Source: Basidiobolus meristosporus CBS 931.73 (lineage: Eukaryota; Fungi; Basidiobolomycota). Taken from it: DNA of 64,000 nt. Location of the stretch: positions 54,262 to 118,261 of the forward strand of contig MCFE01000241.1 of NCBI GenBank assembly GCA_002104905.1. Direction: 5' to 3'. Shown here piece after piece: positions 8,800 to 64,000 of the stretch (positions are counted from its first letter, which is position 1; each line of letters starts with the position of its first letter). A program made the position numbers and the translations under genes. The notes beneath the pieces are model-generated. The model saw only the letters and a list, made by a program, of their open reading frames with translations. It was not told the origin of the DNA and ran no database searches.

Positions 8800-9166
8800 T
8801 GTTATAATCTGCTTCTTGAATGTTTAAGTTAGATCAGTTTGAGTCAAATCCATTGGTTTTATGTTTAGAATATCAGTTTATCAGTATTTTTGATCAAATT
8901 AGTGGCGTTAGTCAGCAGATGAATCTGCAGATTATTATCAGACAGAAATATATATATCAATTAAGATATAAAAGGGTGATGATATTTCAATAGCGTGAGG
9001 CAGCATCCACATGCTAGAGTAGATAACATAGTTAGTGAGCAGTTGAGCTGACAAAATGTAAATAAGGAGCTGCTGGAACTACAATATAGATCAGATCAGG
9101 TTTACTAAATATAATGCTAGCTAAGCTCCCTAGCTCACTACAACACTTATATCAAGAATTGTAACA
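8800..9166 (+). repeat. LTR family A copy, possibly a solo LTR
   Basis: TGTTATAATCTGCT...TTGTAACA, homologous to 1706-2073. Flanks CAAC/CAAT would be a 4-bp TSD with one C>T change. Confidence 0.78.
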
Positions 9167-32149: not shown

Positions 32150-32770
32150 AGGAACTTTGTATTGCTAAGAAAAAACACTTGGAAGAATCTTGAGCTGCAA
32201 TGGACTGGACCATCTATAATCATCAAAGAATATCCATTTACAACTTACCAACTAGTAGAGAAGCAAGGTAATATTCAACAAGATTTAGCTCATAGAGACA
32301 GTCTCATGCTTGCAAGATTTATAGACAATCCTCAACCATCAAGATACTGATATTATTAGAGAAATGATTCAGGAGAGCCCTCTCAACTTGAGTATAGAAG
32401 GATGCTTTAATCTGCCACTTGTATTTTAAAGTGGGATTAGTTTCTAGTCAAACCAACTAGTTCTATATTTAGTCTATTAGTATATCAATATTTCTATCAA
32501 ATTAGTAGTATTGGAGTGCAGATGAATCAGCAGATCCTTAACAGATGTTAATATATATAGCAAGGAAAATTTAACTTTGTGATGATGATGCAATTAAATG
32601 AGTCATCAGCCACAACCTGCATTAGCAAATGCAATTAGTCAGCAATAGATCTGGCAAAGTGAATATACAGAGCTGCTGGAACCTCAGTGAAAGTTGGCTC
32701 AAGTTTTAGTCAATAAAATACTTACTAAACTCCCTATTCCTCTACAACCATTATATCAAGACTTGTAACA
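32150..32770 (+). mobile_element. Gypsy integrase C-terminus, PPT region and 3' LTR family A (32403-32770)
   Basis: NFVLLRKNTWKNLELQWTGP...LAHRDSLMLARF..NPQPSRY matches 1450-1653; LTR TGCTTTAATC...CTTGTAACA. Confidence 0.85.
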
Positions 32771-39700: not shown

Positions 39701-40297
39701 AGGATATTAATTGTCTATTTCGACTTGGGAAACCAGTAACTAACCTTATACATGCGCCTAGAGTAGCACCACTCCATTACAGCCAGGCTTGCAAAATGAG
39801 ACCAACCACGAATAGATCATTGGCTCTCGTGGATATACTGGAGTTTTGCTTTATCTATTCCCAATTTTGGCAATAATAACCTTGTGTTCCCAATTTGGTT
39901 CAGTGACAATCCAAACATGGGTATTGGAGAGTAGATCATTGTGACAGCAATTGTGCGATATCGCAACCTACACACGAATACAATACACTAATGAGCACCA
40001 ATAAGGCACAGCATTCCCTCTTGACGAATTGCTTCGAACACCTTCTGATCCTTTGGTTACTTACGGCATTATTGGTGGAAGCATGGTGTGTACACCCATA
40101 TTAGATATAATTGCTTCCACTTTGTTGGAACATGGCTTAGCCATTGAGTGTATTTAAGGCGAGCATTACTAGGGGTGTTGGGTATACAGTACATTGCATT
40201 TTTTACCATCGAGTTGGAAGAGTAATTTGCTTTAGATCATTGAACAACCCGAAGATTGAGCTTTGTGCGCATTCCTACAACTACTTCCTGAAGCAAT

Positions 40298-43200
40298 ATG
40301 CATACATTCCAAACTCCAAGCAAGCCCGCCCAGGTAAGGATTCGAAGTCTTGAGTGTCCGGCCATGTGGTTCACTGGGACGGCAGAGAATCGTGGCTCCT
40401 AACAAACGTGATTTCATTTTGCTAGACTTTAGAGAGCTACCGCAGCGATGTCAGTGACGATATCTTTGAAGACAATGCCAGCATCACGACAATTAACTCC
40501 ACGGGAAATCTAGAAAGGTAGGGGAGAAAGTGGTAATGGAATGATCTCCTGTGTATCTAAGCTAATGTTTCTATCAGTGAATTCGATGCTCCCATGTATC
40601 AAGCGCCATCAGAGTCTAGCTCAGAGACTACGCTTCACTCTGTTGAATCATACAACGAAAACAGAGGCTTGAAGATCCAAGACATTAATCAAAAGTACCA
40701 GGCGCCTGCAGGTGCCATCACACCTGTTTCTCGGGAAGCTGCTCTGCTTCCATCATATGCCCAAAAGCGTCTGTGGATTCTTGCCCAGAGCGATGCAGCC
40801 AGCTACGTCCACCATATGCAAACAGCATTCCGCCTGCGAGGCTCTCTCAATCATGATGCTCTGCAACGTGCTTTGAATACAGTGTTTACTAGGCATGAGT
40901 CACTTCGCTCGGTTTTTGTCACTGTTGACGGCCAGCCCGAAGTTCAACTATTGGATCCTAAATCTGGGTTACCAATGTTCACTTATGATCTTCGGGGAGA
41001 GCTAGATGTTGAAAGATGTCTTCAGGAGTTGCGTGCAAACGAAGTTCGGGTACCTTTTGACCTCATAACAGGTCCATTGATTCGCGCACAATTGATCCAA
41101 CTTGCTCACGATGATCATGTCTTCTTGCTGACACAGCATCACATTGTTACTGACGGTTGGTCCACGAGGCTGTTGATTCGTGAGCTGAGTGCACTATACA
41201 CAGCCTACCGCAATGATCAACCCGATCCATTGGTTCCACTCACCCTTCAGTACCCTGACTATGCAGCCTGGCAAAGAAAGTGGCTGAGTGGTGATAGGCT
41301 TCGGGAACAGTGCGAATTCTGGCGCACCGCACTCGCCGGGGCACCTGTGTCAATCACCCTGCCAACTGATCGGCCTCGTCCTTCTCGACAATCATTTGCA
41401 GGAGCTCGGATGCCAGTTCATGTGAATTCGCATACAACGTTCGCGCTTAAACAGCTAAGTCAGCAGAACGGAGTTACACTTTTCATGACACTTCTCGCTG
41501 CATGGAGTGTTGTGCTATCACGGCTTTCAGGACAAGACGATATAGTAATTGGTACGCCAAATGCCAATCGTAACCATCACGAGCTCGAGCAATTGATCGG
41601 CCTCTTTGTGAACACTCTGGTGCAACGGGTTGATCTTTCGGGTAATCCAAACGTGTCAGAGCTACTAAGGCGGATCCATCAATTTTCTGCAGCAGCTCAA
41701 GCACATCAAGATGTCCCATTCGACCAAGTAGTGGAGATTATGGACCAGAAATCACCTCTTCAGCTGATGTTCGGGTGGCAAAACAATGAAGTGGGGGAAA
41801 TGCACCTGCCTGGAATTAGTGTGGCACCTCAAGGGGTGAGCCATGGCGTTGCTACGTTTGACCTAAGCCTTGAGCTCCGCGAAGATAATGATGAAATTAT
41901 CGGCCATCTTGATTACTCAACTTCGATCTTTGATCGATCCACAATCGATAGACAGATCGGGTATTTCCTGGCCACGTTGCAAGCCATGTTTACCGATGCC
42001 ACACAGTCTATCATCAACATAAATTTACTTTCTTCTTCAGAACAAGAGCTTTTGCTGCAAAAATGGAACACTGCTGATGAGCCATACCCAAACCAATTAT
42101 GTATCCATCAATTGTTTGAGGATCAAGTTGCTCGCTCTCCCGATGCCATCGCTATTGTGTCGGAGTCTCAGACATTGACTTATACTCAAGTCAACGAGCG
42201 TGCTAATCGCCTCGCACATCGCCTCATTGATCTTGGAGTCAAACCGGATACTCTTGTTGCTCTCTGCGTTGAGCGATCCCCGGCGATTGTGATCGGTATA
42301 CTGGCCATCTTGAAGGCCGGTGGTGCCTACTTGCCACTGGATCCAGTGTATGCTAGTGAACGACTGAACGATATTATTTCCGATGCGTCGCCCTCCATTC
42401 TCTTGGCGGATAAGCATGGTCGCAATACTATTGGCGAGGAATCACTCGCTTCGCTAACTGTGATCGATCCCAACGCAGAGTTGGAGGGCTGCCCCTCTGT
42501 AAACCCACAGGTCTCTAGCCTGACCTTGGACAATCTCATCTATATCATCTACACCTCTGGATCCACCGGCAAGCCAAAGGGCGTGATGGTGAAGCATGCC
42601 CACGTCACCCGCCTGTTTGATACGACGGCTCCCTGGTACCAGTTCAACCAAAAGGATGTCTGGTGCTTGTCTCACTCCTACAGCTTTGACGTATCCGTGT
42701 GGGAGCTATGGGGAGCACTTCGCTACGGCGGAAAGCTGGTTGTCCCTAGCCAGAACGTGATCCGCTCGCCTGAAGATATGTACCGCTTGATCTGCGAGCA
42801 AGAAATCACCGTTCTGAATATGACTCCAAGCTCCTTCAAGCCGCTGATTGGTTGCCAAGCGCAGAGTGAACTCAGTGATCGGCTGCGCTTTGTGATCCTT
42901 GCTGGTGAAGCGCTGGAGCCAGCTATTTTGCAACCGTGGTACGCCACGCGCTCCGAGGATTCACCCAAAATAGTGAACATGTATGGGCCCACCGAAATCA
43001 CCGTGTACGCCACCTATCGCGTGATGAAGGCACAGGATTGCTCCCAAGCCGTCAGTCCCATCGGTGTCAGGCTTCCGGATCTGACCACCTATATTCTGGA
43101 TGCTCAGGGTCGCCCTGTGCCTTTGGGTGCTGTTGGGGAGCTGTGTATTGGTGGTGCCGGCGTCACTTGCGGATATCTTCACCGGCCAGAGCTGACGGCC

Positions 43201-46200
43201 GAAAAGTTCCCTCTTGACCCATTTAGCAAGAAACAGGGTGCCCGCATGTACAGGACTGGGGATCTTGTCCGATACTTGTCTGATGGCAGTATCATCTTCC
43301 TGGGTCGTAACGATGACCAAGTCAAGATCCGTGGATTCAGAATTGAGCTTGGTGAGGTTGAGGCACGTCTTGTTGACCATCCCCTCGTGAAGGAAGCAGC
43401 GGTGCTAGCCCTCGGCAATGGTACGGATAAGCGCCTGGTTGCCTATGTGGTCGCTGAGCAGAGCGAAGGTCTCGCTCATTTGCTGCATTCTCATGTTGCC
43501 GAGAAATTGCCGGACTACATGACACCAACAGCATATGTTCGCATGGACAGACTTCCACTGACAGCTAATGGCAAACTCGACCGTCGCGCACTTCCCGAGC
43601 CGGATAGAGACTCCCTTGTCAGTCAGACATACGAAGCCCCTGTGGGCGAGACGGAAACTGCCTTGGCACGCATCTGGGAGGAACTGCTCAACATCAAACA
43701 AGTTGGGCGCCATGACAACTTCTTCATGCTTGGTGGTCACTCTCTACTCGCTGTTCAGCTGATTGAGCGCCTTCATCACAATGGGCTGGGTCTGTCAATT
43801 CGTGCACTGTTTGAGACACCGACCTTGAGTGTACTTGCCCAATCTCTTAATTTAGACCCTATTGCAGTAGCAGCGGCGGCAGAAGCACCATCAAACCTCA
43901 TTATGCCTGACACTACTCAAATTACCCCGGAAATGCTACCACTCATCGACTTGACTCAGTGGGAAATCGACCATATCGTCAATCAAGTCGAAGGAGGAGT
44001 AAGTAATATCCAGGATATCTACGCTCTCACTCCATTGCAAGATGGTATGCTCTTCCATCACATCATGGCAACCAAGGGCGATCCTTACCTTATATATGTT
44101 ATCATGAATTTTGATAACAAAGCTATACTCGATCGCTACTTGGATGCTGTGCAGAAGGTAGTTGATCGCCACGATGTCTTACGAACGGGCATCATGTGGG
44201 AAGGTCTATCCAACCCTGCTCAGGTTGTATTGCGCCACGCGACACCCTTAGTTACCGAACTTGCATTGAACTCAGCAGATGGTCCAATTACCGAGCAACT
44301 CATAAGGCGCATTGATCCTCGTGAGCATCGTATAGACTTGACCCAAGCTCCATTGACTCGTTTCATCATTGCCCAGGATGCTGATGGTCGTTGGGTAGCT
44401 GCTCAATTGCTACACCATACGATTGGTGATCACTCCACTTTTGAAGAAATGAACCACGAAATTGAGGCATTCCTTGGAGGCCGAGGAGGTTTGCTGCCAG
44501 CACCATCTTCATTCCGTAATCTCATTGCACAAACACGCGCAGGACCAAGCGTAGAAGAACATGAGCAGTTTTTTACCAAGATGCTTAGCGGGATTGAGAC
44601 ACCTGCGTTACCGTTTGGACTTTCGGATGTTCATGGTGACGGTTTGAACATCACCGAAAACTACCGTTTGTTGCCTCAAAACCTGAATAATCGCCTGCGC
44701 AGCCTTGCCAAATCGCTGGGAGTCAGTCTTGCGAGTTTGTGTCATCTTGCATGGGCTGGGGTGGTTGCACGAACCAGCGGTCAACAACAAGTTGTGTTTG
44801 GTACTGTGCTCCTGGGACGTATGCAGGCTGGATCAGTGATAGATCGCGCAATGGGTTTGTTCATCAACACATTACCCATACGCATAGATATGGAGAATTC
44901 CAGTGTTGAAGATACTCTCCGCCAAACCCAAATTAGTTTGGCAGCCCTGCTTGAGTATGAGCATGCATCATTGGCAGTGGCACAGCAATGTAGTAGCGTT
45001 CCAGCCGGCATTCCACTTTTCAGTGCCGTGCTGAATTATCGCCATAACAACAAAAAACTCGCAGAAACCACAAAAATGGAGGGGGTAGAGTTCGGCCATG
45101 AACAGGAACGCACGAACTATCCATTCTTAATGAACGTTGAGGATTCTGGGGACTCTTTAGGCTTGACTGCCCAGATCATTCAGTCATTTGATTCGGCTCA
45201 CATCAACGAGTACATGCAGCAAGCGTTGCAAAATCTGGCCGATGCGTTAGAGTTCACCCCGAAGATGCCAGTTAACGAACTTGAAATAATGCCAGTGGAC
45301 GAGCGCAACCTGTTGCTTCATTCGTGGAACACAACTGACGAAATCTACCCGGACCAGTTGTGTATCCATCATCTCTTTGAGCAGCAGGTCTCTCGATCCC
45401 CCGATGCTGTGGCTATTGTGTATGAATCCGTAACCCTGACCTATGCTGAGGTCAACGCATGCGCCAATCGCCTGGCGCATCACCTCATCGCCGTTGGAGT
45501 CAGACCTGACACTCTTGTGGCGATCTGTGTGGAGCGCAGCCCGGCCATGGTCGTAGGCCTGCTGGCGATCCTGAAAGCCGGTGGTGCCTACGTTCCACTC
45601 GATCCAGTGTATGCAAGTGAGCGCCTTGGCCACATCCTCAAGGATGCGGCACCCATTGCTCTGCTTGCCGATGCAGCAGGCTGTGCCGCACTTGGCAAGG
45701 CTGCTATTGCTTCATTGACTGTGATTGACCCGAATGAAGTACCTGATTTGCCAGCCACCAACCCGCATATCCTTGACCTTACCTCCGAGCATCTTGCTTA
45801 TCTGATCTACACCTCTGGCTCCACTGGTACACCCAAGGGTGTAATGATTCCTCACAGCGGCGCGTGCAACTACTTGCACTGGGCAGTGCAAACGTACGCA
45901 CCTAAGCAAGGCTCTGTGGTATCATCATCACTCTCCTTCGACGCGACCGTTACCAGCTTGTGGACCCCGCTTCTTTATGGTAGCACTGTGACACTACTGA
46001 AGTCAGGCGATGAAATGGTGGCACTGGAAGCCTACGTGCGCCAAGCACAGGGTGAGGGCTTGCTGAAGATCACCCCAGCCCACCTTGACCTGATGGGTCG
46101 ACGCCTACAGGCAGATGGAGCGAAAACGCGAGTGGATACGTTCGTAGTTGGTGGAGAAGCGCTGAGTCCTTCGACAGTAGCACTTTGGCGCAGCATTCAG

Positions 46201-49200
46201 CCTGGTGTGCGGATAGTCAACGAGTATGGACCCACAGAAACAGTGGTCGGGTGTTCCGTCTACGACATGAGCACACCACTGGACCAGGCCATCAATGTCC
46301 CCATTGGCCGTCCTATTGCCAACACCCGACTTTACCTATTGGACTCGCACGGGAAGCCGGTACCACTCGGGGCTGTCGGTGAGCTTCATATCGGTGGAGC
46401 TGGTGTCGCACGCGGCTATTTAAACCGCCCCGACTTGACCGCCGAGCGATTCCTACCCGATCCATTCAGCGATAAAGAAGGTTGTCGCATGTACAAGACC
46501 GGAGACCTGGCTCGCTACCTGCCAGATGGCAACTTGGAATATCTAGGCCGTAACGACCACCAAATCAAGATCCGTGGATTCCGAATCGAGCCTGGTGAGA
46601 TTGAGGCTCGTCTCGTCGATCATCCTCTCGTCAAGGAAGCAGCAGTGCTAGCCCTGGGCGAGGGCACCGAGAAACGTTTAGTTGCATATGTGGTTGCTGA
46701 GCACAAGGAGGGCCTTGCTCATTTGCTCCGCACTCATGTTGCTGAGAAGCTGCCCGATTACATGACACCAGCAGCATTTGTTCGCCTGGATGAACTGCCG
46801 TTAACTCCAAATGGCAAGCTCGACCGTCGGGCACTTCCAGAGCCAGACAGCAGCTCTCTCGTCAGCCAGAAATACGAGGCACCAGTGGGCGAGATCGAGA
46901 TCGCCCTGGCTGCCATCTGGGAGGAGCTCCTTAGTATCGAACGAGTCGGTCGTCACGATAACTTCTTCATGCTTGGTGGCCACTCCTTACTTGCCGTGCG
47001 TTTGATGAATCGGGTCTCTGTTCTCGGTATACAGCTTCAGTTGACTTCACTATTCGCCTCACCAATATTGTCTGATCTTGCGAATGTGATTACTAAGCAG
47101 CTATCTCAAGAGGAGCAGGTGTTTGATAGTATCATGCCGGTATCTCGAGGAGCCGCTCTAATGCCATCTTTTGCTCAGCAACGTTTGTGGTTCCTAGCCC
47201 AAATGGAAGATGTCAGCGACATCTATCACATGCCAATGGCGCTCCGCCTGCGCGGTACTCTCGATCGATATGCATTGCAAGGCGCTTTAAATACCATATT
47301 TTCTAGACATGAGTCACTTCGCTCTGTCTTCGTAACCATTGAAGGCCAACCTCAGGTCCAAATCTTAAGCTCTGACTCTGGAATACCCATGCGTGTTCTT
47401 GAGCTTCAGGGCAAGCAAGATTTGGATAGATACGTTCGTGATTTGAGTGTGAATGAGGCTCATGCATCTTTTGACCTTGAACAAGGACCATTGATTCGTG
47501 CACAGTTGATCCAACTTGCTCACGATGATCATGTCTTCTTGCTAACACAGCATCATATTGTCTCGGATGGTTGGTCAATGGGACTGTTGACTCGTGAGCT
47601 GAGTGACCTCTACACAGCATTCCATAATGGTCTACCCGACCCATTAGCCCCACTTACCCTCCAGTACCCCGACTATGCCGCCTGGCAGAGAAAGTGGCTC
47701 AGCGGTGATAGGCTCCAGGAACAAAGCGAGTTCTGGCGCAATGCACTCGCCGGGGCACCTGTGTCAATCACCCTGCCAACTGACCGGCCTCGTCCTTCTC
47801 GGCAATCGTTTGCAGGAGCCCGGATGCCAATTCGTGTGGACTCGCACACAACATTGGCCCTTAAGCGCCTCAGTCAGCAGAATGGAGCAACATTGTTCAT
47901 GACTATCCTGGCAGCATGGAGTGCTGTGCTGTCGCGACTCTCAGGACAAGATGATATAATGATTGGCACACCAAGCGCCAATCGCAACCATCGCGCGATC
48001 GAGCAATTGATCGGATTCTTTGTAAACACCCTGGTTCTTCGCGTTGATCTTTCCGGTAATCCAAGCGGGTTGGAGCTACTGGAGCGTGTCCGTCAATTTG
48101 CAGTGGCTGCCCAAGCTCATCAGGATCTGCCGTTTGACCAAGTGGTGGAGATTACGAAGCCGCCTCGTAGAATGGATCAGACCCCACTCTTCCAAGTGAT
48201 GTTTGCTTGGCAAAATAATGACGAAGGTGAAGTACATCTACCGGGAATAGTGATGTCACCAGCCGAAGTGACCTATGATATTGTCAAGTTTGACCTGGAC
48301 CTTGAGCTGTACGAAGAGAATGACGAGATTATCGGCCATCTTGGGTACTCGACTGCCCTCTTTGAGCAATCCACCATCGAGAGACATATCGGATATTTGC
48401 AAACCATGTTGCAAGCTATAGCCACCGATGCCGGGCAGTCTGTCTCATCAGTGAATCTACTTTCTTCGTCAGAGCAAGAGCTTTTGCTTCATACATGGAG
48501 TACTACCGACAAACCATATCCCGACCATTTATGTATCCATCATCTCTTTGAGGAGCATGTTATTAGCTCTCCCGACTCTGTTGCCGTTGTGTATGAGTCT
48601 CAGTCACTGACCTATGCTGAGGTCAACGAGCGTGCCAATCGCCTCGCCCATCATCTCATTGAGCTCGGAGTTAAACCCGACAGCCTTGTTGCGATCTGCT
48701 TGGAGCGAGGTCCAGCTCTGGTAGTGGGATTACTTGCGATCCTGAAAGCAGGTGGTGCATATGTCCCTCTGGATCCGTCATATGCTAGCGACAGACTAAG
48801 GGACATAATCAGCGATGCTCAACCGGGTATCTTAATAGCCGATACTGTTGGTCAAACAGCACTTGGTGCTAGTGTACTCTCTTCGGTAACTTTATTGGAC
48901 CCACACACTTACTCAGACTATCCCTCCACCAATCCCGATGTCCCCGAGTTAAATTCACACCATCTTGCCTATGTAATTTACACCTCTGGCTCTACTGGTA
49001 AACCCAAGGGCGTCATGGTCGAGCATGAAGGGTTTGTAAACCTTATCAGAACAAGACCGGATGTCTATGGTATCAGACCCTCCAGTCAGGTTATGCAGTT
49101 CTTCTCTTTCAGCTTTGATGGTGGTGCCTTAGAAACCTTTATGGCCATTGGATTGGGTGCTAGCCTACATATGCTACCGGATTATATCCGACTTGATAGA

Positions 49201-52200: not shown

Positions 52201-55200
52201 CATCACCTTGCCTACGTCATCTACACCTCTGGATCCACTGGAAAGCCTAAGGGTGTGATGGTGGAGCACGCACAGGTCACTCGCCTGTTTGATGCAACGG
52301 CCGCCTGGTACCAGTTCAACGAAAACGATGTCTGGTGCCTGCTGCACTCGTACAGCTTCGATTTCTCCGTGTGGGAGTTGTGGGGTGCTCTGCGATATGG
52401 TGGTAAGTTGGTGCTCCCATCCCACCATGTCACTCGTTCCTCCGAGGACCTCTATGAACTGATCTGTGAGCAAGGCATCACCGTGCTGAACCTTACCCCG
52501 AGCGCCTTCAAGCCGCTGATTGCGTGCCACGCGCAAAGTGAGCTCCAGGACCAATTGCGCTACGTGATCTTCGGAGGGGAGGCCCTCGAGCCGGCCATCC
52601 TGCAGCCATGGTACGCCACCCGATCTGAACACTCCCCCAAGATCGTGAACATGTATGGCATCACGGAGACCACAGTCCATGTCACCTACCGTGTGATGAA
52701 GAAGACGGACTGCACACAGGCGATTAGTCCCATTGGTGCAAGAATCCCTGATCTGACCACGTACATCCTGGACACTCGCGGCAATCCCGTGCCTATGGGA
52801 GTGGTTGGCGAGCTGTACATCGGAGGTGCTGGTGTCACCCGTGGATACCTGAACCGACCAGAGCTGACAGCTGAACGGTTCCCACTTGACCCATTCAGCA
52901 AGACGCCAGGTGCTCGCATGTACCGGACTGGTGACCTCGGTCGCTACCAAAGTGATGGCAGCCTCATCTTTTTGGGTCGTAACGATCATCAAGTCAAGAT
53001 CCGCGGTTTCCGTATTGAACTCGGGGAGATTGAGGCTCGTCTTGTTGATCACCCACTGGTCAAAGAAGCAGCGGTACTTGCAGTCGGTGACGACTCTGAC
53101 AAGCGTCTAGTTGCATATGTTGTTGCTGCACACGAGGAGGAACTTGCGCATTTGCTTCGCTCTCATGTGGCAGAAAAACTACCTGATTACATGACCCCAG
53201 CAGCGTTTGTTCGTATGGATAAATTTCCGCTAACGGCGAATGGTAAGCTCGACCGTCGTGCCCTTCCAGAGCCCGATAGCGACTCTCTCGTCAGCCAGAA
53301 ATACGAGGCACCTGTGGGTGAGATCGAAACTGCACTAGCGAGTATTTGGGAGGAGCAACTCAACGTCACTCGAGTCGGGCGTCATGACAACTACTTTATG
53401 CTTGGTGGACATTCTCTGCTTGCTGTACAGCTGATTGAACGCCTTCGTCGTATTGGACTTGGTTTGTCTATCCGTGCTTTGTTTGACACTCCTACCTTAA
53501 GCGTACTCGCCCAATCTATTAATCATGACAATGTAGCTGTAGCAGCAGCAGCAGCCACGCCATCCAACCTTATTAATCCTGACACCACCGAAATATTCCC
53601 AGCAATGCTTCCTCTGATCGATCTGACCCAGAGTGACATTGATCATATTGTCAATCAGGTTGAAGGAGGCGTTAGTAATATTCAAGATATCTATGCCCTG
53701 GCTCCATTACAGGATGGCATGCTGTTCCATCATATCATGTCGACTAAGGGTGATCCGTACCTGCTCATCAGTGCTATTGCCTTCGATAGCAGAGCGGTAC
53801 TCAATGAATACCTGAGTGCTGTGCAGAAGGTGATCGATCGTCACGACATCTTGCGCACGAGCATTATGTGGGAAGGCCTTTCCACTCCTGCTCAGGTTGT
53901 GTTGCGCCACGCGACTTTGTCCTTCACCGAGCTGTCGCTCAACTCATCCGATGGCCCTATTGTGGAGCAACTGAAGCAACGGTTCGATCCTCGGGAACAT
54001 CGTATGGATTTAACTCGAGCCCCTTTGTTGCGTTATGTGGCTGCCCAGGATGATGATGGTAGATGGATAGTGATTGAATTGATGCATCACATCATTGATG
54101 ACAATACTTCAGTGCAGCTAATGTACATGGAGATCCAAGCATTCATGGATGGTGAAGGTGACTCACTACCATCACCACAACCGTTCCGTAACCTCATTGC
54201 ACAAGCTCGTGCAGGACCCAATGTCGAGGCACATGAGCGTTTCTTCACCCAGATGCTTGGCGAAATCGACACGCCAGCCTTGCCTTTTGGGCTGTCAGAT
54301 GTGCACGGTGAGGGCCTAGATATCACTGAAACCCAACTATGGCTACCACAAGATTTGAACAAACGCCTTCGTAGCCAAGCTAGATCCATGGGTGTTAGTC
54401 TTGCCAGCTTATGCCATCTGGCTTGGGCACAGGTGATTGCTAGAACTAGTGGACAGCAACAAGTAGTGTTTGGCACCGTGCTCTTCGGACGTATGAATGC
54501 CGGCTCAGGCCTAAAGAGTACAATGGGTCCGTTCATCAATACCTTACCACTTCGCATTGGCATGGACGCCAGCAGTATTCTCGATACTGTGCGAAAGACT
54601 CACGCCACTCTAGCCGCTTTGATGGAGCATGAATACGCATCATTAACGCTGGCACAAAGGTGCAGTAGTGTCCCCTCAGGCACCCCAATGTTTAGTGCAC
54701 TTTTGAACTACCGTCATAATATGCAAGTATCCAATGAGGATACAAGAATTGCTGGCATTGAACACTTGGAAGGGCAAGAGCGCACTAATTATCCATTCGT
54801 CATGTCTGTAGAAGACTTTGGGGACACACTCGGAGTAACTGCTCAGGTCGTACAGCCATATGATTCAGTACGCATTGCAGAGTACATGAAGCAAGCCTTA
54901 CAAAACCTGGCAAGTGCTTTGGAGTGCTCACCTACAATGGCCGCTCAAGAATTGGAAGTCTTGGCTATAGAGGAGCGTAACCTGTTGCTTCATTTATGGA
55001 ATACAGCTGACGAAGCCTATCCCAACCAATTATGTATCCATCAATTGTTTGAGGATCAAGTTGTTCGCTCTCCCGATGCCATCGCTATTGTGTCGGAGTC
55101 TCAGACATTGACTTATACTCAAGTCAACGAGCGTGCTAATCGCCTCGCACATCGCCTCATTGATCTTGGAGTCAAACCGGATACTCTTGTTGCTCTCTGC

Positions 55201-58200
55201 GTTGAGCGATCCCCGGCGATTGTGATCGGTATACTGGCCATCATGAAGGCCGGTGGTGCCTACTTGCCACTGGATCCAGTGTATGCTAGTGAACGACTGA
55301 ACGATATTATTTCCGATGCGTCGCCCTCCATTCTCTTGGCGGATAAGCATGGTCGCAATACTATTGGCGAGGAATCACTCGCTTCGCTAACTGTGATCGA
55401 TCCCAACGCAGAGTTGGAGAGCTGCCCCTCTGCAAACCCACAGGTCTCTAGCCTGACCTTGGACAATCTCATCTATATCATCTACACCTCTGGATCCACC
55501 GGCAAGCCAAAGGGCGTGATGGTGAAGCATGCCCACGTCACCCGCCTGTTTGATACGACGGCTCCCTGGTACCAGTTCAACCAAAAGGATGTCTGGTGCT
55601 TGTCTCACTCCTACAGCTTTGACGTATCCGTGTGGGAGCTATGGGGAGCACTTCGCTACGGCGGAAAGCTGGTTGTCCCTAGCCAGAACGTGATCCGCTC
55701 GCCTGAAGATATGTACCGCTTGATCTGCGAGCAAGAAATCACCGTTCTGAATATGACTCCAAGCTCCTTCAAGCCGCTGATTGGTTGCCAAGCGCAGAGT
55801 GAACTCAGTGATCGGCTGCGCTTTGTGATCCTTGCTGGTGAAGCGCTGGAGCCAGCTATTTTGCAACCGTGGTACGCCACGCGCTCCGAGGATTCACCCA
55901 AAATAGTGAACATGTATGGGCCCACCGAAATCACCGTGTACGCCACCTATCGCGTGATGAAGGCACAGGATTGCTCCCAAGCCGTCAGTCCCATTGGTGT
56001 CAGGCTTCCGGATCTGACCACCTATATTCTGGATGCTCAGGGTCGCCCTGTGCCTTTGGGTGCTGTTGGGGAGCTGTGTATTGGTGGTGCCGGCGTCACT
56101 TGCGGATATCTTCACCGGCCAGAGCTGACGGCCGAAAAGTTCCCTCTTGACCCATTTAGCAAGAAACAGGGTGCCCGCATGTACAGGACTGGGGATCTTG
56201 TCCGATACTTGTCTGATGGCAGTATCATCTTCCTGGGTCGTAACGATGACCAAGTCAAGATCCGTGGATTCAGAATTGAGCTTGGTGAGGTTGAGGCACG
56301 TCTTGTTGACCATCCCCTCGTGAAGGAAGCAGCGGTGCTAGCCCTCGGCAATGGTACGGATAAGCGCCTGGTTGCCTATGTGGTCGCTGAGCAGAGCGAA
56401 GGCCTCGCTCATTTGCTGCATTCTCATGTTGCCGAGAAATTGCCGGACTACATGACACCAACAGCATATGTTCGCATGGACAGACTTCCACTGACAGCTA
56501 ATGGCAAACTCGACCGTCGCGCACTTCCCGAGCCGGATAGAGACTCCCTTGTCAGTCAGACATACGAAGCCCCTGTGGGCGAGACGGAAACTGCCTTGGC
56601 ACGCATCTGGGAGGAACTGCTCAACATCAAACAAGTTGGGCGCCATGACAACTTCTTCATGCTTGGTGGTCACTCTCTACTCGCTGTTCAGCTGATCGAA
56701 CGTCTCCGTCGCATTGGCCTTGGGTTGTCTGTTCGTGCCTTGTTCGACACCCCTACGCTGAGTGTAATTGCCCAATCTCTCAACCGTGACCGTGTTGCTG
56801 TAGCAGCTTCGGCAGTGGCACCACCAAACCTCATCACACCTGACACCACCGAGATCACCCCGGAGATGCTTCCACTGATCGACTTGACTCAGGACGACAT
56901 TGATCATATTGTCAACCAGGTTGAAGGAGGGGTTAGCAATATTCAAGACATTTATGCTCTGGCTCCATTACAAGACGGTATGCTGTTCCATCATATCATG
57001 CTCACTAAGGGTGATCCTTACGTGATCAATGTGATCATGGCTTTTGACAACAGAGCTATACTCGATCGCTACTTGGATGCTGTGCAGAAGGTGGTGGATC
57101 GCCATGATATCTTGCGTACTGGGATTATGTGGGAAGGCTTATCCACGCCTGCTCAAGTTGTACTACGTCACGCGACTCTCTCGGTCACTGAGCTTGTATT
57201 GAACCCAGCTGATGGCTCAATTGTTGAGCAACTCACAAAGCGCGTGGACCCTCGAGAGCACCGTATCGACTTGACCCAAGCTCCATTGACCCGTTTCATC
57301 ACTGCTCAGGATATTGATGGACGTTGGGTAGCTGCTCAATTGCTACACCATACGATTGGTGATCACTCCACCCTCGAAGAAATGAATTATGAAATTGAGT
57401 CGTTCCTTGGGGGTAGAGGGGAGACACTACCTGTCCCTTCACCTTTCCGCAACCTCATCGCCCAGGCGCGTGCGGGACCTGGTGTCGAGGAACAAGAACG
57501 ATTCTTCACAAAAATGCTTGGAGAGATTGACACACCTGCCTTGCCTTTTGGACTGACAGATGTTCACGGGAATGGCTTCAATTTAACCGATTGCTACATA
57601 TCACTGCCACAAGACTTAAATGATAGCCTTCGTAATCACGCCAAGAAGCTGGGGGTCAGTCTTGCAAGTATGTGTCACCTGGCTTGGGCGCAGGTGATTT
57701 CCCGAACCAGCGGACAACAGAGAGTAGTGTTTGGCACGGTGCTCTTTGGGCGTATGCAGGCTGGATCCGGTGCAGATCACGCAATGGGATTGTTTATTAA
57801 TACACTTCCAATTCGTATTGACATGGAAAATATCAGCGTCCAAGAATCTATCCTCCAGACCCAAGCCTCTTTAGCCGCCTTGATGGATCATGAGCATGCA
57901 TCTTTGGCACTAGCCCAGAGATGTAGTAGTGTTCCCTCTGGCACTCCAATGTTCAGCGCCCTTTTGAACTACCGTCACAATAAGCAAGTAGCTGGCGGGG
58001 ACGCAAAAATCGATGGTATCGAGTATCTTGATGGGCAAGAGCGTACCAACTATCCATTCACTATGTCTGTAGAAGATGGAGGAGTATCATTGGGATTAAC
58101 TGCTCAAGCTGTTCGCCCATATGATTCGTCTCGCATTTGTAACTACATGCAGCAGGCTCTACAGAGTCTAGATGAGGCTTTGAATCATGCACCGAACACA

Positions 58201-61200
58201 TCAGTCGGAGACCTTGAGATCTTGCCTACGGATGAACGCCACTTATTAATTCAATCGTGGAATGATACTGATAAGCCTTGTCCTCATCACATACGTGTTC
58301 ACCAGCTGTTTGAGAATCAGGTGGACCAAACTCCAGATGCCATCGCCGTTGTCTACAGAGATCAGGCTTTGACTTTCCGGGAACTGAATGCACGCGCTAA
58401 CTGGTATGCGCAGCAGCTTAAGGCACTTGGTATCCAACCGGGAGACTTTATTGCTACCCTACTGAAGAGATCCACTGAGCTGATTGTCATGCAAATTGCG
58501 ATTCTCAAGGTCGGAGCTGCCTACGTTCCGATCGATCCGAAGGCACCTGCCGATCGTCAAGCATTTATTATTGACGATTGTGCAGCACGGCTGTTGGTTA
58601 CCACCGAAAATACTCAAATCCCATCCGTGCTTAATACACCGCTGCTTCGTTTAAGTGACAACCCGGATAGTACAGACATAATTATCGATGCTCCGAATGT
58701 GATCTCTAGTGGTTCCAGCGTAGCCATCGCATATGCAATGTACACTTCTGGCTCCACAGGAATTCCCAAAGGCGTGCTTGTACCACATCGAGCAATCGTA
58801 CGCCTGACTATCAACAACGGTTATGCGAACGTTGGACCGGACGATCGTGTCGCGTTTGCTGCCAATCCTGCATTTGATGCAAGTACATTTGAAATCTGGG
58901 CGCCACTGCTCAATGGCGGCCAAGTGGTGATTATTGATGCGGACACGTTTACGGACTCGGTCCTAATGGCAGAAGCGATTGATAGACATCACATCACTAC
59001 TCTCTTCCTGACAACAGTGCTTTTCAATCAATTCGTCTTATCTATGGGTTCGACCTTGGCTAAGCTGAGATATCTTCTCTGTGGAGGAGAGCAAGAAAGC
59101 CTAGAGTCTTTCGCCACTCTTCTGAAATACGGAGGGCCTGAGCACCTCATCCATTGCTATGGACCTACCGAGACCACAACGTTTGCCACTACGTATGAGG
59201 TAACGAGTATTGATCACATACAAGGTCGCTTGCCTATCGGTCGGCCTATTTCCAAAACAAGTGTCTATGTATTAGATCAACATGGTCATCCAGTGCCATT
59301 AGGGGTTGTGGGAGAGCTTTACATTGGTGGTACAGGAGTTGCAAATGGCTACCTCAACCGAGCTGACCTATCAGCAGAACGCTTCCTTCCTGATCCGTTC
59401 AGTACGTGCGAGGGGAATCGTATGTACAGAACAGGCGATTTGGTGCGCTTCTTACCCGATGGTAATTTAGTATTTGTAAGCCGTAACGATCATCAAGTCA
59501 AAATCCGTGGATTCCGTATTGAACTCGGCGAAATTGAAGCTCGTCTTATTGAGCACCCTCTTGTTAACGAAGTAGCAGTACTTGCGATCGGCAATGGTGC
59601 GGATAAGCGCCTGGTTGCCTATGTGGTCGCTGAGCAGAGCGAAGGCCTCGCTCATTTGCTGCATTCTCATGTTGCCGAGAAATTGCCGGACTACATGACA
59701 CCAACAGCATATGTTCGCATGGACAGACTTCCACTGACAGCTAATGGCAAACTCGACCGTCGCGCACTTCCCGAGCCGGATAGAGACTCCCTTGTCAGTC
59801 AGACATACGAAGCCCCTGTGGGCGAGACGGAAACTGCCTTGGCACGCATCTGGGAGGAACTGCTCAACATCAAACAAGTTGGGCGCCATGACAACTTCTT
59901 CATGCTTGGTGGTCACTCTCTACTCGCTGTTCAGCTGATCGAACGTCTCCGTCGCATTGGCCTTGGGTTGTCTGTTCGTGCCTTGTTCGACACCCCTACG
60001 CTGAGTGTAATTGCCCAATCTCTCAACCGTGACCGTGTTGCTGTAGCAGCTTCAGCAGTGGCACCACCGAACCTCATCACACCTGACACCACCGAGATCA
60101 CCCCGGAGATGCTTCCACTGATCGACTTGACTCAGGACGACATTGATCATATTGTCAACCAGGTTGAAGGAGGGGTTAGCAATATTCAAGACATTTATGC
60201 TCTGGCTCCATTACAAGACGGTATGCTGTTCCATCATATCATGGCGACCAAAGGCGATCCTTACCTGATCTTCGGTATCATGGCCTTTGCGGATAAGCAT
60301 ATTCTCACTCGATACTTGGATGCTGTGCAGAAGGTGGTGGATCGCCATGATATCTTGCGTACTGGGATTATGTGGGAAGGCTTATCCACGCCTGCTCAAG
60401 TTGTACTACGTCACGCGACTCTCTCGGTCACTGAGCTTGTATTGAACCCAGCTGATGGCTCAATTGTTGAGCAACTCACAAAGCGCGTGGACCCTCGAGA
60501 GCACCGTATCGACTTGACCCAAGCTCCATTGACCCGTTTCATCACTGCTCAGGATATTGATGGTCGCTGGATAGCTGCTCATCTCCTACATCATGCCATT
60601 GGTGATCACTCTGCCGCCGATGAAATGAACCATGAAATCGAGGCGATCCTGGATGGTCGAGCAGACCTGCTCCCGGCACCATCCTCTTTCCGTAATCTCA
60701 TTGCACAAGCACGAGTAGGACATAGTGTTGAGGCACACGAGCGTTTCTTCACTGAGATGCTTTCCGAGATAGAAACGCCAGCATTGCCTTTTGGGTTGTC
60801 CGATGTTCATGGTAACGGTCACAATATCACTGAGGCCTACTGTTTACTACCCCAGGGCCTGAACAACCGCCTTCGTAGTCAAGCCAAGTCGATGGGCGTT
60901 AGTCTTGCTAGTATATGCCATCTTGCATGGGCTCAGGTAATTGCCCGAACTAGTGGACAGCAGCAAGTTGTGTTTGGTACGGTGCTCTTTGGACGTATGC
61001 AGGCTGGATCTGGTGCAGATCGTGCCATGGGATTGTACATCAACACGCTACCGATTCGTATCGATGTAGATAACGCCAGTGTTCAGGATACAGTGCGTCA
61101 GACCCAAGCCTCATTAGCAGCCTTGATGGATCATGAGCACGCATCCCTGGCACTAGCCCAGAGATGTAGTAGTGTTCCCTCTGGTATCCCCATGTTCAGC

Positions 61201-64000
61201 GCACTTTTGAACTATCGCCACAATAAGCAAGAACCGACTAACGATACAGGAATCCCTGGTATCGAATACATTGAAGGGCAAGAGCGTACCAATTATCCAT
61301 TCTTAATGTCCGTAGAAGATAATGGAACCTCGCTTGGGGTCACGGCTCAAATTGTCCAGCCTTACGATTCGAATCGCATCATCAATTATATGCAGCAAGC
61401 CTTACAGAGCATAGCTGATGCGTTGGAGTTCACGCCCATGATGCCAATTAATGAGCTCGATGTCTTGCCTATAGATGAACGCAACTTGGTACTTGATACA
61501 TGGAACATCACCGATGGCCCATATCCAGACCATTTATGCGTCCATCAACTATTCGAGGAACAGGTCTCTCGTTCCCCGAACGCCATCGCTGTTGTGTCGG
61601 AATCTCAGACACTGACCTATTCTGAGGTCAACGAGCGTGCCAATCGCCTCGCCCATCATCTCATTGAGCTCGGAGTCAAGCCTGACACCCTTGTTGCACT
61701 CTGCGTAGAGCGTTCCGTTGCAATCGTCATTGGAATACTGGCCATCTTGAAGGCTGGTGGCGCTTATTTGCCACTGGACCCGGTGTATGCTAGTGAACGA
61801 CTCAACGATATTGTTTCCGATGCGTCGCCCTCCATTCTCTTGGCGGACGAGCATGGTAGCAACACTATTGGTGAAGCATCACTCGCTTCACTGACGGTGG
61901 TCGACCCCAATGCGCAGTTCGAAGAACACCCGCCACCAACCCACAAGTCACCAGCCTGACCTCGCATCACCTTGCTTACGTCATCTACACCTCTGGATCC
62001 ACTGGAAAGCCTAAGGGTGTGATGGTGGAGCACGCACAGGTCACTCGCCTGTTTGATGCAACGGCCGCCTGGTACCAGTTCAACGAAAACGATGTCTGGT
62101 GCCTGCTGCACTCGTACAGCTTCGATTTCTCCGTGTGGGAGCTGTGGGGTGCTCTGCGATATGGTGGTAAGTTGGTGCTCCCATCCCACCATGTCACTCG
62201 TTCCTCCGAGGACCTCTATGAACTGATCTGTGAGCAAGGCATCACCGTGCTGAACCTTACCCCGAGCGCCTTTCAAGCCGCTGATTGCGTGCCACGCGCA
62301 AAGTGAGCTCCAGGACCAATTGCGCTACGTGATCTTCGGAGGGGAGGCCCTCGAGCCGGCCATCCTGCAGCCATGGTACGCCACCCGATCTGAACACTCC
62401 CCCAAGATCGTGAACATGTATGGCATCACGGAGACCACAGTCCATGTCACTTACCGTGTGATGAAGAAGACGGACTGCACACAGGTGATTAGTCCCATTG
62501 GTTCAAGAATCCCTGATCTGACCACGTACATCCTGGACACCCGCGGCAATCCTGTGCCTATGGGAGTGGTTGGCGAGCTGTACATCGGAGGTGCTGGTGT
62601 CACCCGTGGATACCTGAACCGACCAGAGCTGACAGCTGAGCGGTTCCCACTTGACCCATTCAGCAAGACGCCAGGTGCTCGCATGTACCGGACTGGTGAC
62701 CTCGGTCGCTACCAAAGTGATGGCAGCCTCATCTTTTTGGTCGTAACGACCACCAAGTCAAGATCCGCGGTTTCCGTATTGAACTCGGGGAGATTGAGGC
62801 TCGTCTTGTTGATCACCCACTGGTCAAAGAAGCAGCGGTACTTGCAGTCGGTGACGACTCTGACAAGCGTCTAGTTGCATATGTTGTTGCTGCACACGAG
62901 GAGGAACTTGCGCATTTGCTTCGCTCTCATGTGGCAGAAAAACTACCTGATTACATGATCCCAACGGCATTTGTTCGCATGGACAAACTTCCACTGACTG
63001 CAAATGGCAAACTCGACCGTCGGGCACTTCCAGAGCCCGATAGTGACTCTCTCGTCAGCCAGAAATACGAGGCACCAGTGGGCGAGATCGAGACCGCCCT
63101 GGCTGCCATCTGGGAAGAGTTGCTCCAGATCAATAGAGTAGGACGTCATGACAACTTCTTCATGCTCGGTGGCCATTCCCTACTCGCTGTACAGCTGATT
63201 GAACGCCTTCGTCGCATTGGACTCGTTCTACCTATTCGTGCTCTATTCAATACTCCTACTTTGAGCATACTAGCTCAATCTCTCAATTGTGACCGTATAT
63301 CTGTTGCAGCAGCATCAATGATACCTCCAAATCTTATTAAGCACGAAACCACCGAAATAACTCCGGAAATGCTTCCACTCATTGATTTGACTCAGAGTGA
63401 TATTGATCGTATCGTCAGCCAGGTCGAAGGAGGTGTTAGTAATATTCAAGATATCTACGCCCTGGCTCCATTGCAGGATGGCATGCTATTCCATCACATC
63501 ATGTCGACTAAGGGTGACCCGTATTTGCTCATCAGTGCACTTGCCTTCGATAGCAGAGCTGTCCTCGATCGTTACCTTGGCGCTGTGCAAAAGGTGGTAG
63601 ATCGCCATGAATCTTGCGCACGGGCATTATGTGGGAAGGTCTTTCCACCCCTGCTCAGGTTGTATTGCGCCATGCAACTTTGTCCTTCACCGAGCTGTCG
63701 CTCAACTCATCCGATGGCTCTATTGTGGAGCAACTGAAGCAACGGTTCGATCCCCGCGAGCATAGCATCGACTTGACCCAGGCACCGTTGTTACGTTATG
63801 TGGCTGCCCAGGATGATGATGGCAGATGGATAGTGATTCAACTGATGCATCACATCATTGATGACAATACTTCAGTGCAGCTAATGTACATGGAGATCCA
63901 AGCATTCATGGATGGTGAAGGTGACTCACTACCATCACCACAACCGTTCCGTAACCTCATTGCACAAGCTCGTGCAGGACCCAATGTCGAGGCACATGAG
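40298..64000 (+). CDS. Giant multimodular NRPS (>=8 modules, bacterial-type with dual E/C domains); proposed exons 40298-40333, 40426-40517, 40578-beyond window end
   Basis: 7121-aa ORF 40594-61959 with repeated C (HHxxxD), A ([47 protein letters not shown]) and T (FF.LGGHSL) motifs. Homologous sequence continues through four single-base indels to 64000. No TE or reductase domain within the window. The NRPS call is near certain; the spliced 5' exons are a prediction. Confidence 0.95.
40334..40425 (+). other. Predicted spliceosomal intron 1 (92 nt)
   Basis: CAG|GTAAGG ... CCTAAC (40398-40403) ... TTTTGCTAG|; phase 0; keeps ATG 40298 in frame with exon 2. Confidence 0.72.
40518..40577 (+). other. 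Predicted spliceosomal intron 2 (60 nt)
   Basis: AAG|GTAGGG ... GCTAAT (40561-40566) ... TATCAG|; phase 2; AG+T forms Ser and runs E-F-D-A-P into the ATG at 40594. Confidence 0.72.
40744..43850 (+). other. NRPS module 1: C(LCL-type, HHIVTDG) - A1 (code DVWNIAMVYK) - T1
   Basis: PSYAQKRLW...HHIVTDGWS; code read by aligning to the Thr-type A4; GGHS serine at 43741. Confidence 0.85.
44000..47100 (+). other. NRPS module 2: dual E/C (HHIMATKGD; HHTIGD) - A2 (DATKVGEVGK, Asn-type) - T2
   Basis: The N-terminal HH[I/L]xxxxGD motif marks dual epimerisation/condensation domains; the code resembles Asn codes DLTK[L/I]GEVGK. Confidence 0.82.
47160..50260 (+). other. NRPS module 3: C(LCL, HHIVSDG) - A3 (DGLIVADVSK, substrate unresolved) - T3
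   Basis: [11 protein letters not shown]...[10 protein letters not shown]; no N-terminal HH motif. Confidence 0.85.
50420..53520 (+). other. NRPS module 4: dual E/C (HHTIGD) - A4 (DFWNIGMVHK, Thr) - T4
   Basis: FDFSVWE, TVLNLTP, YVIFGGE and [13 protein letters not shown] give the canonical Thr code. Confidence 0.9.
53680..56790 (+). other. NRPS module 5: variant dual E/C (HHIMSTKGD; active site HHIIDD) - A5 (near-identical to A1) - T5
   Basis: HHIIDDNTS at 54085-54111; A5 matches A1 at offset 12933 with only a handful of substitutions. Confidence 0.88.
56950..60030 (+). other. NRPS module 6: dual E/C (HHTIGD) - A6 (DAFFLGCTFK, Ile/Val-type) - T6
   Basis: FDASTFE, TLFLTT, YLLCGGE and [12 protein letters not shown]; resembles Ile codes such as DAFFLGVTFK/DAMFLGCTYK. 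Confidence 0.82.
60190..63290 (+). other. NRPS module 7: dual E/C (HHAIGD) - A7 (Thr, near-identical to A4, three indels) - T7
   Basis: 61345-62958 matches 51580-53194; indels at 61929-31, 62271-73 and 62739-40. Confidence 0.85.
63450..64000 (+). other. NRPS module 8, N-terminal part of variant dual E/C (HHIMSTKGD; HHIIDD), truncated by the window end
   Basis: Paralogue of C5; one 1-bp deletion at ~63610; open frame to 64000. Confidence 0.85.

Follow-up and report, generated by a model that had tools for sequence, protein, structure and literature searches.

The 64,000-nt stretch of the Basidiobolus meristosporus CBS 931.73 genome analysed here (GCA_002104905.1, contig MCFE01000241.1, positions 54,262–118,261; hereafter the window) ends inside a giant nonribosomal peptide synthetase (NRPS) gene of bacterial type, whose reading frame breaks down shortly before the last base. 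This locus raises the question of whether the fungus carries a complete assembly line at this site, what such an enzyme would produce, and from where the gene was acquired. To our knowledge, early-diverging fungi have few gene-linked natural products (malpinins, malpicyclins, malpibaldins, and calpinactam), and among the large Basidiobolus assembly lines we know of none with a known product. Our analysis indicates that the window probably holds part of a single, apparently intact gene for ten condensation-adenylation-carrier (C-A-T) modules and a thioesterase (TE), ~11,050 aa in length and preceded by a predicted 48-aa spliced leader. A seemingly broken, open-ended gene thereby becomes a defined target, with ten modules, TE release, and a prediction of residues and stereochemistry.

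The ORF listing of the window contained a single NRPS open reading frame (ORF; 40594–61959, + strand) of 7,121 codons, uninterrupted over 21.4 kb, in agreement with the intron-free 21-kb body reported in a preliminary description of this DNA. Pfam identified only Condensation, AMP-binding, AMP-binding_C, and PP-binding domains in the 7,121-aa product, in repeats; a weak match to T4_Gp59_C fell below the cut-off and was disregarded. The carrier-domain serines are spaced by 1,055–1,088 aa, which leaves no room for a stand-alone epimerization (E) domain, so each module is C-A-T; the preliminary description had likewise seen no stand-alone E domains. C1 and C3 carry the motif HHIV[TS]DGWS of the ordinary LCL type. 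[quoted passage not shown]

Past position 61959 the NRPS homology goes on in other frames. This tail is 93.4% identical at the nucleotide level to its paralogue within the gene, A4-T4-C5 (51735–54237), and is offset from it by four 1-nt indels at 61929, 62271, 62739, and 63611, three of them in homopolymer runs. The comparison revealed no in-frame stops, and the codon differences (92 synonymous, 44 non-synonymous) resemble those expected under purifying selection. Four frame breaks in the last 2.1 kb, as assembled, could nevertheless mark a decaying pseudogene in which the 3′ frameshifts are real and the line is dead after module 6: the gene model P0001 (7,764 aa) bridges the breaks only with artificial introns, and at least one NRPS model in this clade is silent (Tabima et al, 2020; PMC7466969). 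The reads contradict this view. We compared positions 58001–64000 with Logan contigs of runs X1 and X2, from the source sample, and of run X3, which belongs to the same study under another organism label. In all three sets the contigs insert a C after 61928, lack one base at 62271, and insert a G after 62738, and after 63610 every run inserts one base (T in X1 and X2, C in X3); the window version of the four sites was carried by none of the X1–X3 contigs. Each of the four breaks past 61959 is an error in the assembly. A dead line is accordingly very improbable, and we rejected the pseudogene reading on the read evidence. Besides the indels, the window differs from all read contigs by seven substitutions within 1.2 kb (61889–63076), and the last ~2 kb of its contig is poorly polished. 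Run X3 also differs from X1 and X2 at 61416, 62186, and 62750, as well as in the base inserted at 63610, and therefore represents a different data set. At contig ends, this assembly carries indel errors that can pass for pseudogenes, a practical warning for anyone reading genes from them.

With these corrections the frame stays open for 23.4 kb (7,803 codons) up to the window end. P0001, encoded on a 118,261-bp contig, stops five residues before that end, as expected if the contig ends there. The continuation was found in P0009, a 5,115-aa protein encoded on a 25,295-bp contig, which matches window positions 58147–64000, reads through the breaks, and agrees with the corrected window at every position along 1,373 consecutive residues. 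The remaining differences are frameshift blocks within the first ~500 residues of P0009, at the start of its own contig, and thus mirror the contig-end artefact of the window. Most simply read, the two contigs share a 5.85-kb overlap, and each has a poorly polished end; the assembly was probably broken by the near-identical modules. Beyond the window, P0009 encodes A8-T8, C9 (LCL)-A9 (Thr)-T9, and C10 (variant)-A10 (Asn)-T10-TE, where the C-terminal TE shows the motif GWSFGG and a precomputed match to PF00975. The preliminary description had counted at least eight modules and looked to downstream sequence for the others and for the release domain; the count holds as a minimum, and the line, rather than being open-ended, comprises ten modules, of which P0009 supplies the part from A8 to the TE.

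Counted from the ATG at 40594, the composite protein is 11,045 aa long. We scanned it for the elements of a type I modular NRPS, namely the C-domain His motif, the A3 core motif SGxTGxPKG, the A8 core motif, the A10 Lys, and the carrier GGxS serine, and found ten A3 motifs, ten carrier serines, and ten C domains, the complement of a type I modular enzyme. An extra N-terminal HH[I/L]xxxxGD motif is present in C2, C4–C8, and C10 and lacking in C1, C3, and C9.

The two contigs might instead represent two recently duplicated loci or haplotypes, in which case the window gene could end differently. They are separate in the assembly, contig depth varies from 109 to 233 across the overlap, and a few two-allele sites, each at about half depth, lie at 61185–61191. 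However, the corrected overlap is free of differences other than the contig-end blocks, and the depth doubles where the sequence has near-identical copies elsewhere in the gene: at 61.9–63.1 kb, 394 of 397 aa are identical to A9 and 392 of 397 to A4. Such copies account for the doubled depth of this stretch, and we rejected it as a sign of duplication. The half-depth variants are located 31–37 nt short of one end of a contig that reaches 58001 at the other, as would be the case for a paralogous C-domain tail. An apparent joint from 61231 to 58001 in the read contigs was likewise dismissed as a rearrangement; upstream of 58001 the sequence is similar to the end of C7, and the joint is an artefact of paralogy within the gene. 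Overall, two separate loci appear unlikely. Three points should be set against a single intact gene: given the near-identity of corrected A7 to A9, the correcting contig may blend two copies; the P0009 contig was compared at the protein level, which leaves a near-identical second locus or haplotig as an alternative to an overlap; and gene expression is presumed and leader splicing predicted, the latter from the gene model P0001 and the DNA.

At its 5′ end, the gene model P0001 adds the 48-aa leader N-terminal to the large exon. On the DNA, this leader would be encoded by a first exon at 40299–40334 (+; an ATG and 11 codons, matching the P0001 N-terminus), directly followed by GTAAGG, and by a second exon at 40426–40517 (+; from P0001 sequence compared with the DNA); the predicted introns at 40335–40425 and 40518–40577 are both of the GT-AG type. 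The previously noted start at 40298 fits this predicted ATG and the intron pair, the same as in P0001.

All modules lie on the + strand. Their specificity codes were read by alignment to A4, anchored on the motifs FDxS, LTPS, GGE, YGPTE, and GKxDR, and the specificity positions follow GrsA numbering. Module 1, which includes the start of the large exon, spans 40578–43848 and combines the LCL domain C1 (HHIVTDGWS) with an A1 code of DVWNIAMVYK. It is followed by module 2 (43867–47091; dual E/C, DATKVGEVGK, Asn), module 3 (47110–50256; LCL, DGLIVADVSK), module 4 (50275–53520; dual E/C, DFWNIGMVHK, Thr), module 5 (53539–56781; a dual-type C5 with the acidic variant HHIIDDNTS, putatively Thr-dehydrating, and again DVWNIAMVYK), and module 6 (56800–60024; dual E/C, DAFFLGCTFK, Ile). 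Module 7 (60043–63284; dual E/C, Thr code) contains the assembly errors at 61928/9, 62271, and 62738/9. Module 8 begins at 63303 with the dual-type domain C8 (HHIIDDNTS), which contains the fourth error (63610/1) and is cut by the window end at 64000; its A domain reads DGLIIADVSK. Modules 9 (LCL, Thr) and 10 (variant C, Asn, then TE) complete the line. A4, A7, and A9 share one code, DFWNIGMVHK, and we take this and the Asn code DATKVGEVGK to be textbook codes.

The code of A6 is identical to that of module 5 of the calpinactam synthetase CalA (P0086). The same parser, applied to CalA, returned the order E/C, LCL, LCL, E/C, E/C, which equals the pattern D-L-L-D-D-L, with D-allo-Ile in fifth position, that we presume for calpinactam. 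The published order of C and E/C domains in CalA mirrors its peptide (PMC9893682). Applied to CalA and to the MalA-like Mortierella alpina protein P0127, our parser thus recovered the order of E/C and LCL domains in agreement with the literature (PMC9893682; PMC9365243). Table 1 of PMC9365243 gives the CalA (Nps5) order as E/C, C, E/C, E/C, C, whereas the deposited P0086 parses as E/C, C, C, E/C, E/C. The pocket DVWNIAMVYK of A1 and A5 is Thr-derived and also occurs in Mortierella sp. AD010 (P0066), with the related DVWNIAMVHK in Mycoavidus (P0032) and Gryganskiella (P0164); the D-Ala previously proposed with a query for positions 1 and 5 is not supported by it. The DGLI[VI]ADVSK domains A3 and A8 fall in an A-domain clade confined to Mortierellaceae. 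A full-text literature search for DVWNIAMVYK, DGLIVADVSK, DGLIIADVSK, and DAFFLGCTFK returned no matches.

Based on these codes and C-domain types, the predicted decapeptide is D-X1, L-Asn, D-X3, Dhb, D-X1, D-allo-Ile, Dhb, L-X3′, Dhb, L-Asn, where Dhb is dehydrobutyrine. Following standard NRPS collinearity, each A domain would load one L-amino acid onto its carrier; the LCL-type domains C3 and C9 would couple L-donors; and at the canonical dual E/C domains C2, C4, C6, and C7, the upstream residue would be inverted to D and then coupled. C5, C8, and C10 would take over a chain ending in Thr and most likely eliminate water to give Dhb with no re-protonation, and the TE would free the decapeptide. 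Two considerations weigh against reading this structure too literally. The residues loaded by A1 and A5 (X1) and by A3 and A8 (X3 and X3′) are left as X (residue labels, distinct from the run handles). The D assignments are predictions, since in Pseudomonas dual E/C domains can be idle (PMC10531924).

As for the N-terminus, C1 is full-length with an intact His motif, and the sequence ahead of it resembles an internal A-T and T-C linker. C1 is 70–72% identical to C3 and C9 and forms one clade with them (support 100), grouping with these LCL domains and not as a starter C domain for lipoinitiation. Since C1 copies an internal LCL domain, it is uncertain whether the peptide is N-acylated; on this sequence, acylation would be possible but is unsupported.

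The assignment of Dhb depends on the C domains that follow the Thr modules. At the core His motif, C5, C8, and C10 read HHIIDDNTS, and the other four dual domains read HH[TA]IGDHS[TA]. Each of the three variants follows a Thr module (A4, A7, and A9), and every Thr module precedes one. In a set of 166 related NRPSs, 25 of the 63 dual-like C domains that follow Thr modules have the acidic variant HHxx[D/E]D, compared with 1 of 477 elsewhere (Fisher's p ~1e-24, to be read in light of the domains not being independent). On a FastTree phylogeny of 310 dual-type C domains (from this gene and 120 relatives), seven changes are required to explain the variant, in seven separate clades, and only two columns, both within the His motif, discriminate in all seven: Gly to Asp and Thr to Ser. 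The lone exception outside Thr contexts is a domain of P0147 (Pseudomonas syringae) with HHLIDDVTS, located before the A domain at residue 6002 and after a Ser-coded module (DVWHLSLIDK); this domain may be a dehydroalanine-forming counterpart.

Two product families connect the variant to Dhb. The first is that of the malpinin synthetase MalA of M. alpina, a 7,760-aa enzyme in which a domain designated C* has been proposed to make (Z)-Dhb (PMC9365243). The M. alpina protein P0127 (7,734 aa), which we liken to MalA by architecture and length and not by accession, has the published MalA order Cs, E/C, E/C, E/C, C, C*, E/C, TE. At the C* position, after a Thr module, it reads HHLVEDNST, an active-site change in common with HHIIDDNTS of C5, C8, and C10. 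The second family is the tolaasin group, in which Dhb1-Pro2 is conserved (PMC6433849). This fits the pattern of a Thr module 1, a variant C2, and a Pro module 2 that we observed in proteins of Pseudomonas cichorii, Burkholderia glumae, and B. plantarii and in P0058. A 2023 review had suspected “special dehydrating C/E domains” (PMC10880069). Because the variant tracks Thr, the C* domain of P0127 shares the change, and the Dhb1-Pro2 positions match, we favour three Dhb residues and consider Dhb at positions 4, 7, and 9 a likely, sequence-based assignment. The preliminary description had offered Thr or Dhb; the Thr modules stand by their code, and the choice now leans to Dhb. As for mechanism, our guess is that a motif without its His but with an added acid would divert the enolate from re-protonation to β-elimination.

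The main alternative is that C5, C8, and C10 act as normal dual E/C domains adapted to Thr as the donor, which would give D-allo-Thr in place of Dhb. D-allo-Thr formed by C/E domains is common in Pseudomonas lipopeptides. Both the HHxxxD core and the N-terminal HHxxxxGD motif are intact in the variants, which cluster in the tree with the canonical domains of the same protein. However, a Thr donor alone does not require the variant, as 38 post-Thr domains keep the canonical HHxxGDH; the variant swaps a conserved His at motif position +6 and adds an acidic residue; and the same change stands at the Dhb position of the MalA-like protein and at the Dhb1-Pro2 positions (PMC9365243; PMC6433849). We therefore regard D-allo-Thr as the less probable outcome, though one that deserves serious consideration, and retain Dhb as the preferred assignment. 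Against the latter it should be said that those 38 canonical domains make up the majority of the 63 post-Thr dual-like domains, and that the link from variant to Dhb rests on two product families with proteins identified by architecture and not by accession. If HHxx[D/E]D holds as a marker, genome miners could tell Dhb from D-allo-Thr in lipopeptide predictions. For the B. meristosporus product, the prediction can steer a liquid chromatography–mass spectrometry search for three 18-Da deficits.

Regarding the origin of the gene, its best named full-length matches are from Photorhabdus (58% identity), Mycetohabitans and Mycoavidus (56%), Benniella (53%), and M. alpina (49–51%). In the FastTree phylogeny of 310 dual-type C domains and an IQ-TREE analysis of 67 (LG+C20 PMSF), the seven dual-type domains of the gene group together (100/99), with M. 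alpina domains as their sister (99/95), within a clade of Mortierellaceae domains plus this gene (99/91). The whole of this dual-type clade sits among domains of Mycetohabitans/Mycoavidus and Photorhabdus/Xenorhabdus, and the LCL domains show the same nesting. The clade shared with CalA and MalA-like domains also groups the dual domains of the gene with established E/C domains. An approximately unbiased test rejected a Mortierellaceae clade without this gene (p=0.00024, for a group named after seeing the tree). The A domains are mosaic, with A3, A6, and A8 grouping with Mortierellaceae and A2 and A10 with Burkholderiaceae, and none of the relatives compared has the same module order. The gene appears from these trees to belong to a bacterial-derived NRPS lineage common to Mortierellaceae, with roots among Burkholderiaceae-like bacteria.

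These results agree with the earlier view of a bacterial-type enzyme, given the identity to Photorhabdus, Mycetohabitans, and Mycoavidus and the position of the C domains inside the radiation of Burkholderiaceae and Photorhabdus/Xenorhabdus. The C-domain phylogeny, put forward at that stage as a check, places the gene among Mortierellaceae NRPSs, themselves among Burkholderiaceae. The claim of horizontal acquisition holds for the bacterial-derived lineage and not for a direct passage into this fungus: because the gene nests among its nearest kin, the Mortierellaceae NRPSs, a direct bacterium-to-Basidiobolus transfer is not shown. The intron-free body argues against a simple transfer of DNA from a Mortierella gene with introns, as calA has six (PMC9893682). 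Within the gene, A1-T1 and A5-T5 share 98.7% nucleotide identity, A2 and A10 are 99% identical at the amino acid level, and A4, A7, and A9 are 97–98% identical; such near-identical internal copies argue that the gene grew in place, through duplication or conversion of modules. Its position within Mortierellaceae genes is relevant to the spread of bacterial NRPSs through the fungi, and a single ancestor shared with the Mortierellaceae NRPSs would, if true, mean fungus-to-fungus transfer between two phyla or repeated donation by one endosymbiont lineage.

Because of this bacterial affinity, the flank of the gene has to be considered. Positions 1–36800 form a decayed block of gypsy and copia long terminal repeat (LTR) retrotransposons, extremely depleted of CpG and eukaryotic in character. 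Pfam matches of ORFs in this block comprise gypsy-type RT_RNaseH, Integrase_H2C2, and rve and copia-type RVT_2 and gag; eleven further flank ORFs had zero Pfam matches, so of the LTR/CACTA debris described previously the LTR part is substantiated and CACTA was not verified. The observed/expected CpG ratio is 0.03–0.09 up to 36.8 kb and 0.7–0.9 past a sharp boundary, and the GC content is 37–41% in 1–36 kb compared with ~50% in the NRPS gene. The CpG pattern resembles repeat-directed C-to-T mutation that spares unique DNA. Between boundary and gene, positions 36801–40298 are non-coding DNA with normal CpG (ratio 0.69–0.88, GC 45%), presumably the promoter region; these 3.5 kb contain no ORF longer than 123 aa and zero Pfam matches, and the low coding density makes the spacer unlike bacterial DNA. 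The block also holds a family of 300-nt direct repeats in four copies (1728–2027, 8821–9120, 17234–17533, and 32424–32723; 64–88% identity), which are probably LTR remnants of nested retroelements.

In the assembly, the NRPS gene and 37 kb of eukaryotic retrotransposon DNA form one contiguous stretch. The bacterial character of the gene could also be explained by DNA of an endosymbiont or contaminant mis-joined to fungal DNA. Such a joint would account for the jump in GC (38% to 50%) and CpG ratio at 36.8 kb and for the body without introns, and endofungal Mycetohabitans and Mycoavidus are among the relatives. Yet the CpG depletion is restricted to repeats, as repeat-directed mutation predicts, and the boundary is separated from the gene by the ORF-poor spacer and by the predicted spliced leader with its two GT-AG introns. 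The best bacterial identity is no more than 58% and the closest kin are fungal genes, and 97% of words sampled from 38.0–46.0 kb were found in the source runs. Tabima et al (2020; PMC7466969) reported that all large NRPS models attributed to horizontal gene transfer (HGT) have coverage within 0.6 standard deviations of their scaffolds and fungal genes on both sides. We consider a mis-join extremely improbable and treat the gene as part of the fungal genome. Runs X4–X6, which carry the species label of the source in another study, contained almost no words of 38.0–46.0 kb; the gene may be strain-specific, although near-absence in these runs is no proof of absence. Tabima et al (2020; PMC7466969) found much smaller numbers of such A domains in strain B9252.

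The class, and probably the locus, was already catalogued in 2020, with product not known. Tabima et al (2020; PMC7466969) placed the B. meristosporus CBS 931.73 NRPS models 375475, 307892, and 343011 in a “surfactin-like clade” and described them as intron-poor, with 7–8 A domains and bacterial affinity, normal coverage, and fungal neighbours, inferring HGT. The gene analysed here is likewise large and intron-poor, with bacterial best named matches and a eukaryotic flank, and is probably one of these models. None of the listed models has ten A domains, as expected if the assembly splits the gene. That study addressed A domains only; it did not cover dual E/C domains, module order, a product prediction, or the C-domain link to Mortierellaceae. 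The present analysis newly adds the corrected structure of ten modules, a prediction of the product, the analysis of the variant C domains, and the link to Mortierellaceae.

No characterised synthetase matches the gene, consistent with the suggestion in the preliminary description that its product is undescribed. Its resemblance to MalA (PMC9365243) lies in a bacterial-like fungal C-A-T architecture with dual E/C domains and a terminal TE, in a Thr module followed by a dual-type C* giving (Z)-Dhb, of which C5, C8, and C10 would be the putative counterparts, and in the C domains of the MalA-like P0127, which fall in the same fungal clade. In contrast, MalA has seven modules and one Dhb as opposed to ten modules and three putative Dhb residues, an unrelated residue order, and 59% identity over A4-T4-C5, and malA contains introns that the body of our gene lacks. 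CalA of M. alpina (PMC9893682; P0086) has sister-group dual E/C domains (P0083, a CalA allele), and in both enzymes the A domain with the code DAFFLGCTFK is followed by a dual E/C domain; unlike our gene, it has six modules, another peptide, a caprolactam-forming release, and six introns, at ~50% overall identity. In the lipopeptide synthetases of Burkholderiaceae and Pseudomonas (Mycetohabitans, Mycoavidus; tolaasin/peptin) and of Photorhabdus/Xenorhabdus, dual E/C domains also replace separate E domains, Thr and Asn codes recur, and acidic-variant C domains follow Thr at Dhb positions, with 56–66% identity. These bacterial systems usually consist of several proteins with a genuine starter C domain for lipidation, whereas the B. 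meristosporus enzyme would be one polypeptide in a eukaryotic genome, with a predicted spliced leader and an LCL copy as its first C domain.

Taken jointly, the readings would describe a previously unseen D-rich decapeptide in which three Dhb residues arise from three C/E-derived dehydrating domains of one 11,000-aa enzyme, with HHxx[D/E]D, in which the dual E/C His motif lacks its Gly and the next His, as a general, repeatedly evolved predictor of Dhb versus D-allo-Thr in Proteobacteria and fungi, and a single bacterial-derived ancestor shared with the Mortierellaceae NRPSs. This full combination is tentative and more doubtful than the module structure or the Dhb assignment taken separately.

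The same dual-E/C family also includes two NRPSs that NCBI annotates as gall-midge proteins, P0046 (Contarinia nasturtii, 6,605 aa) and P0157 (Sitodiplosis mosellana, 5,316 aa), at 43–52% identity. The domains of P0046 form their own long-branched clade, and the two proteins represent either HGT into insects or symbiont contamination.

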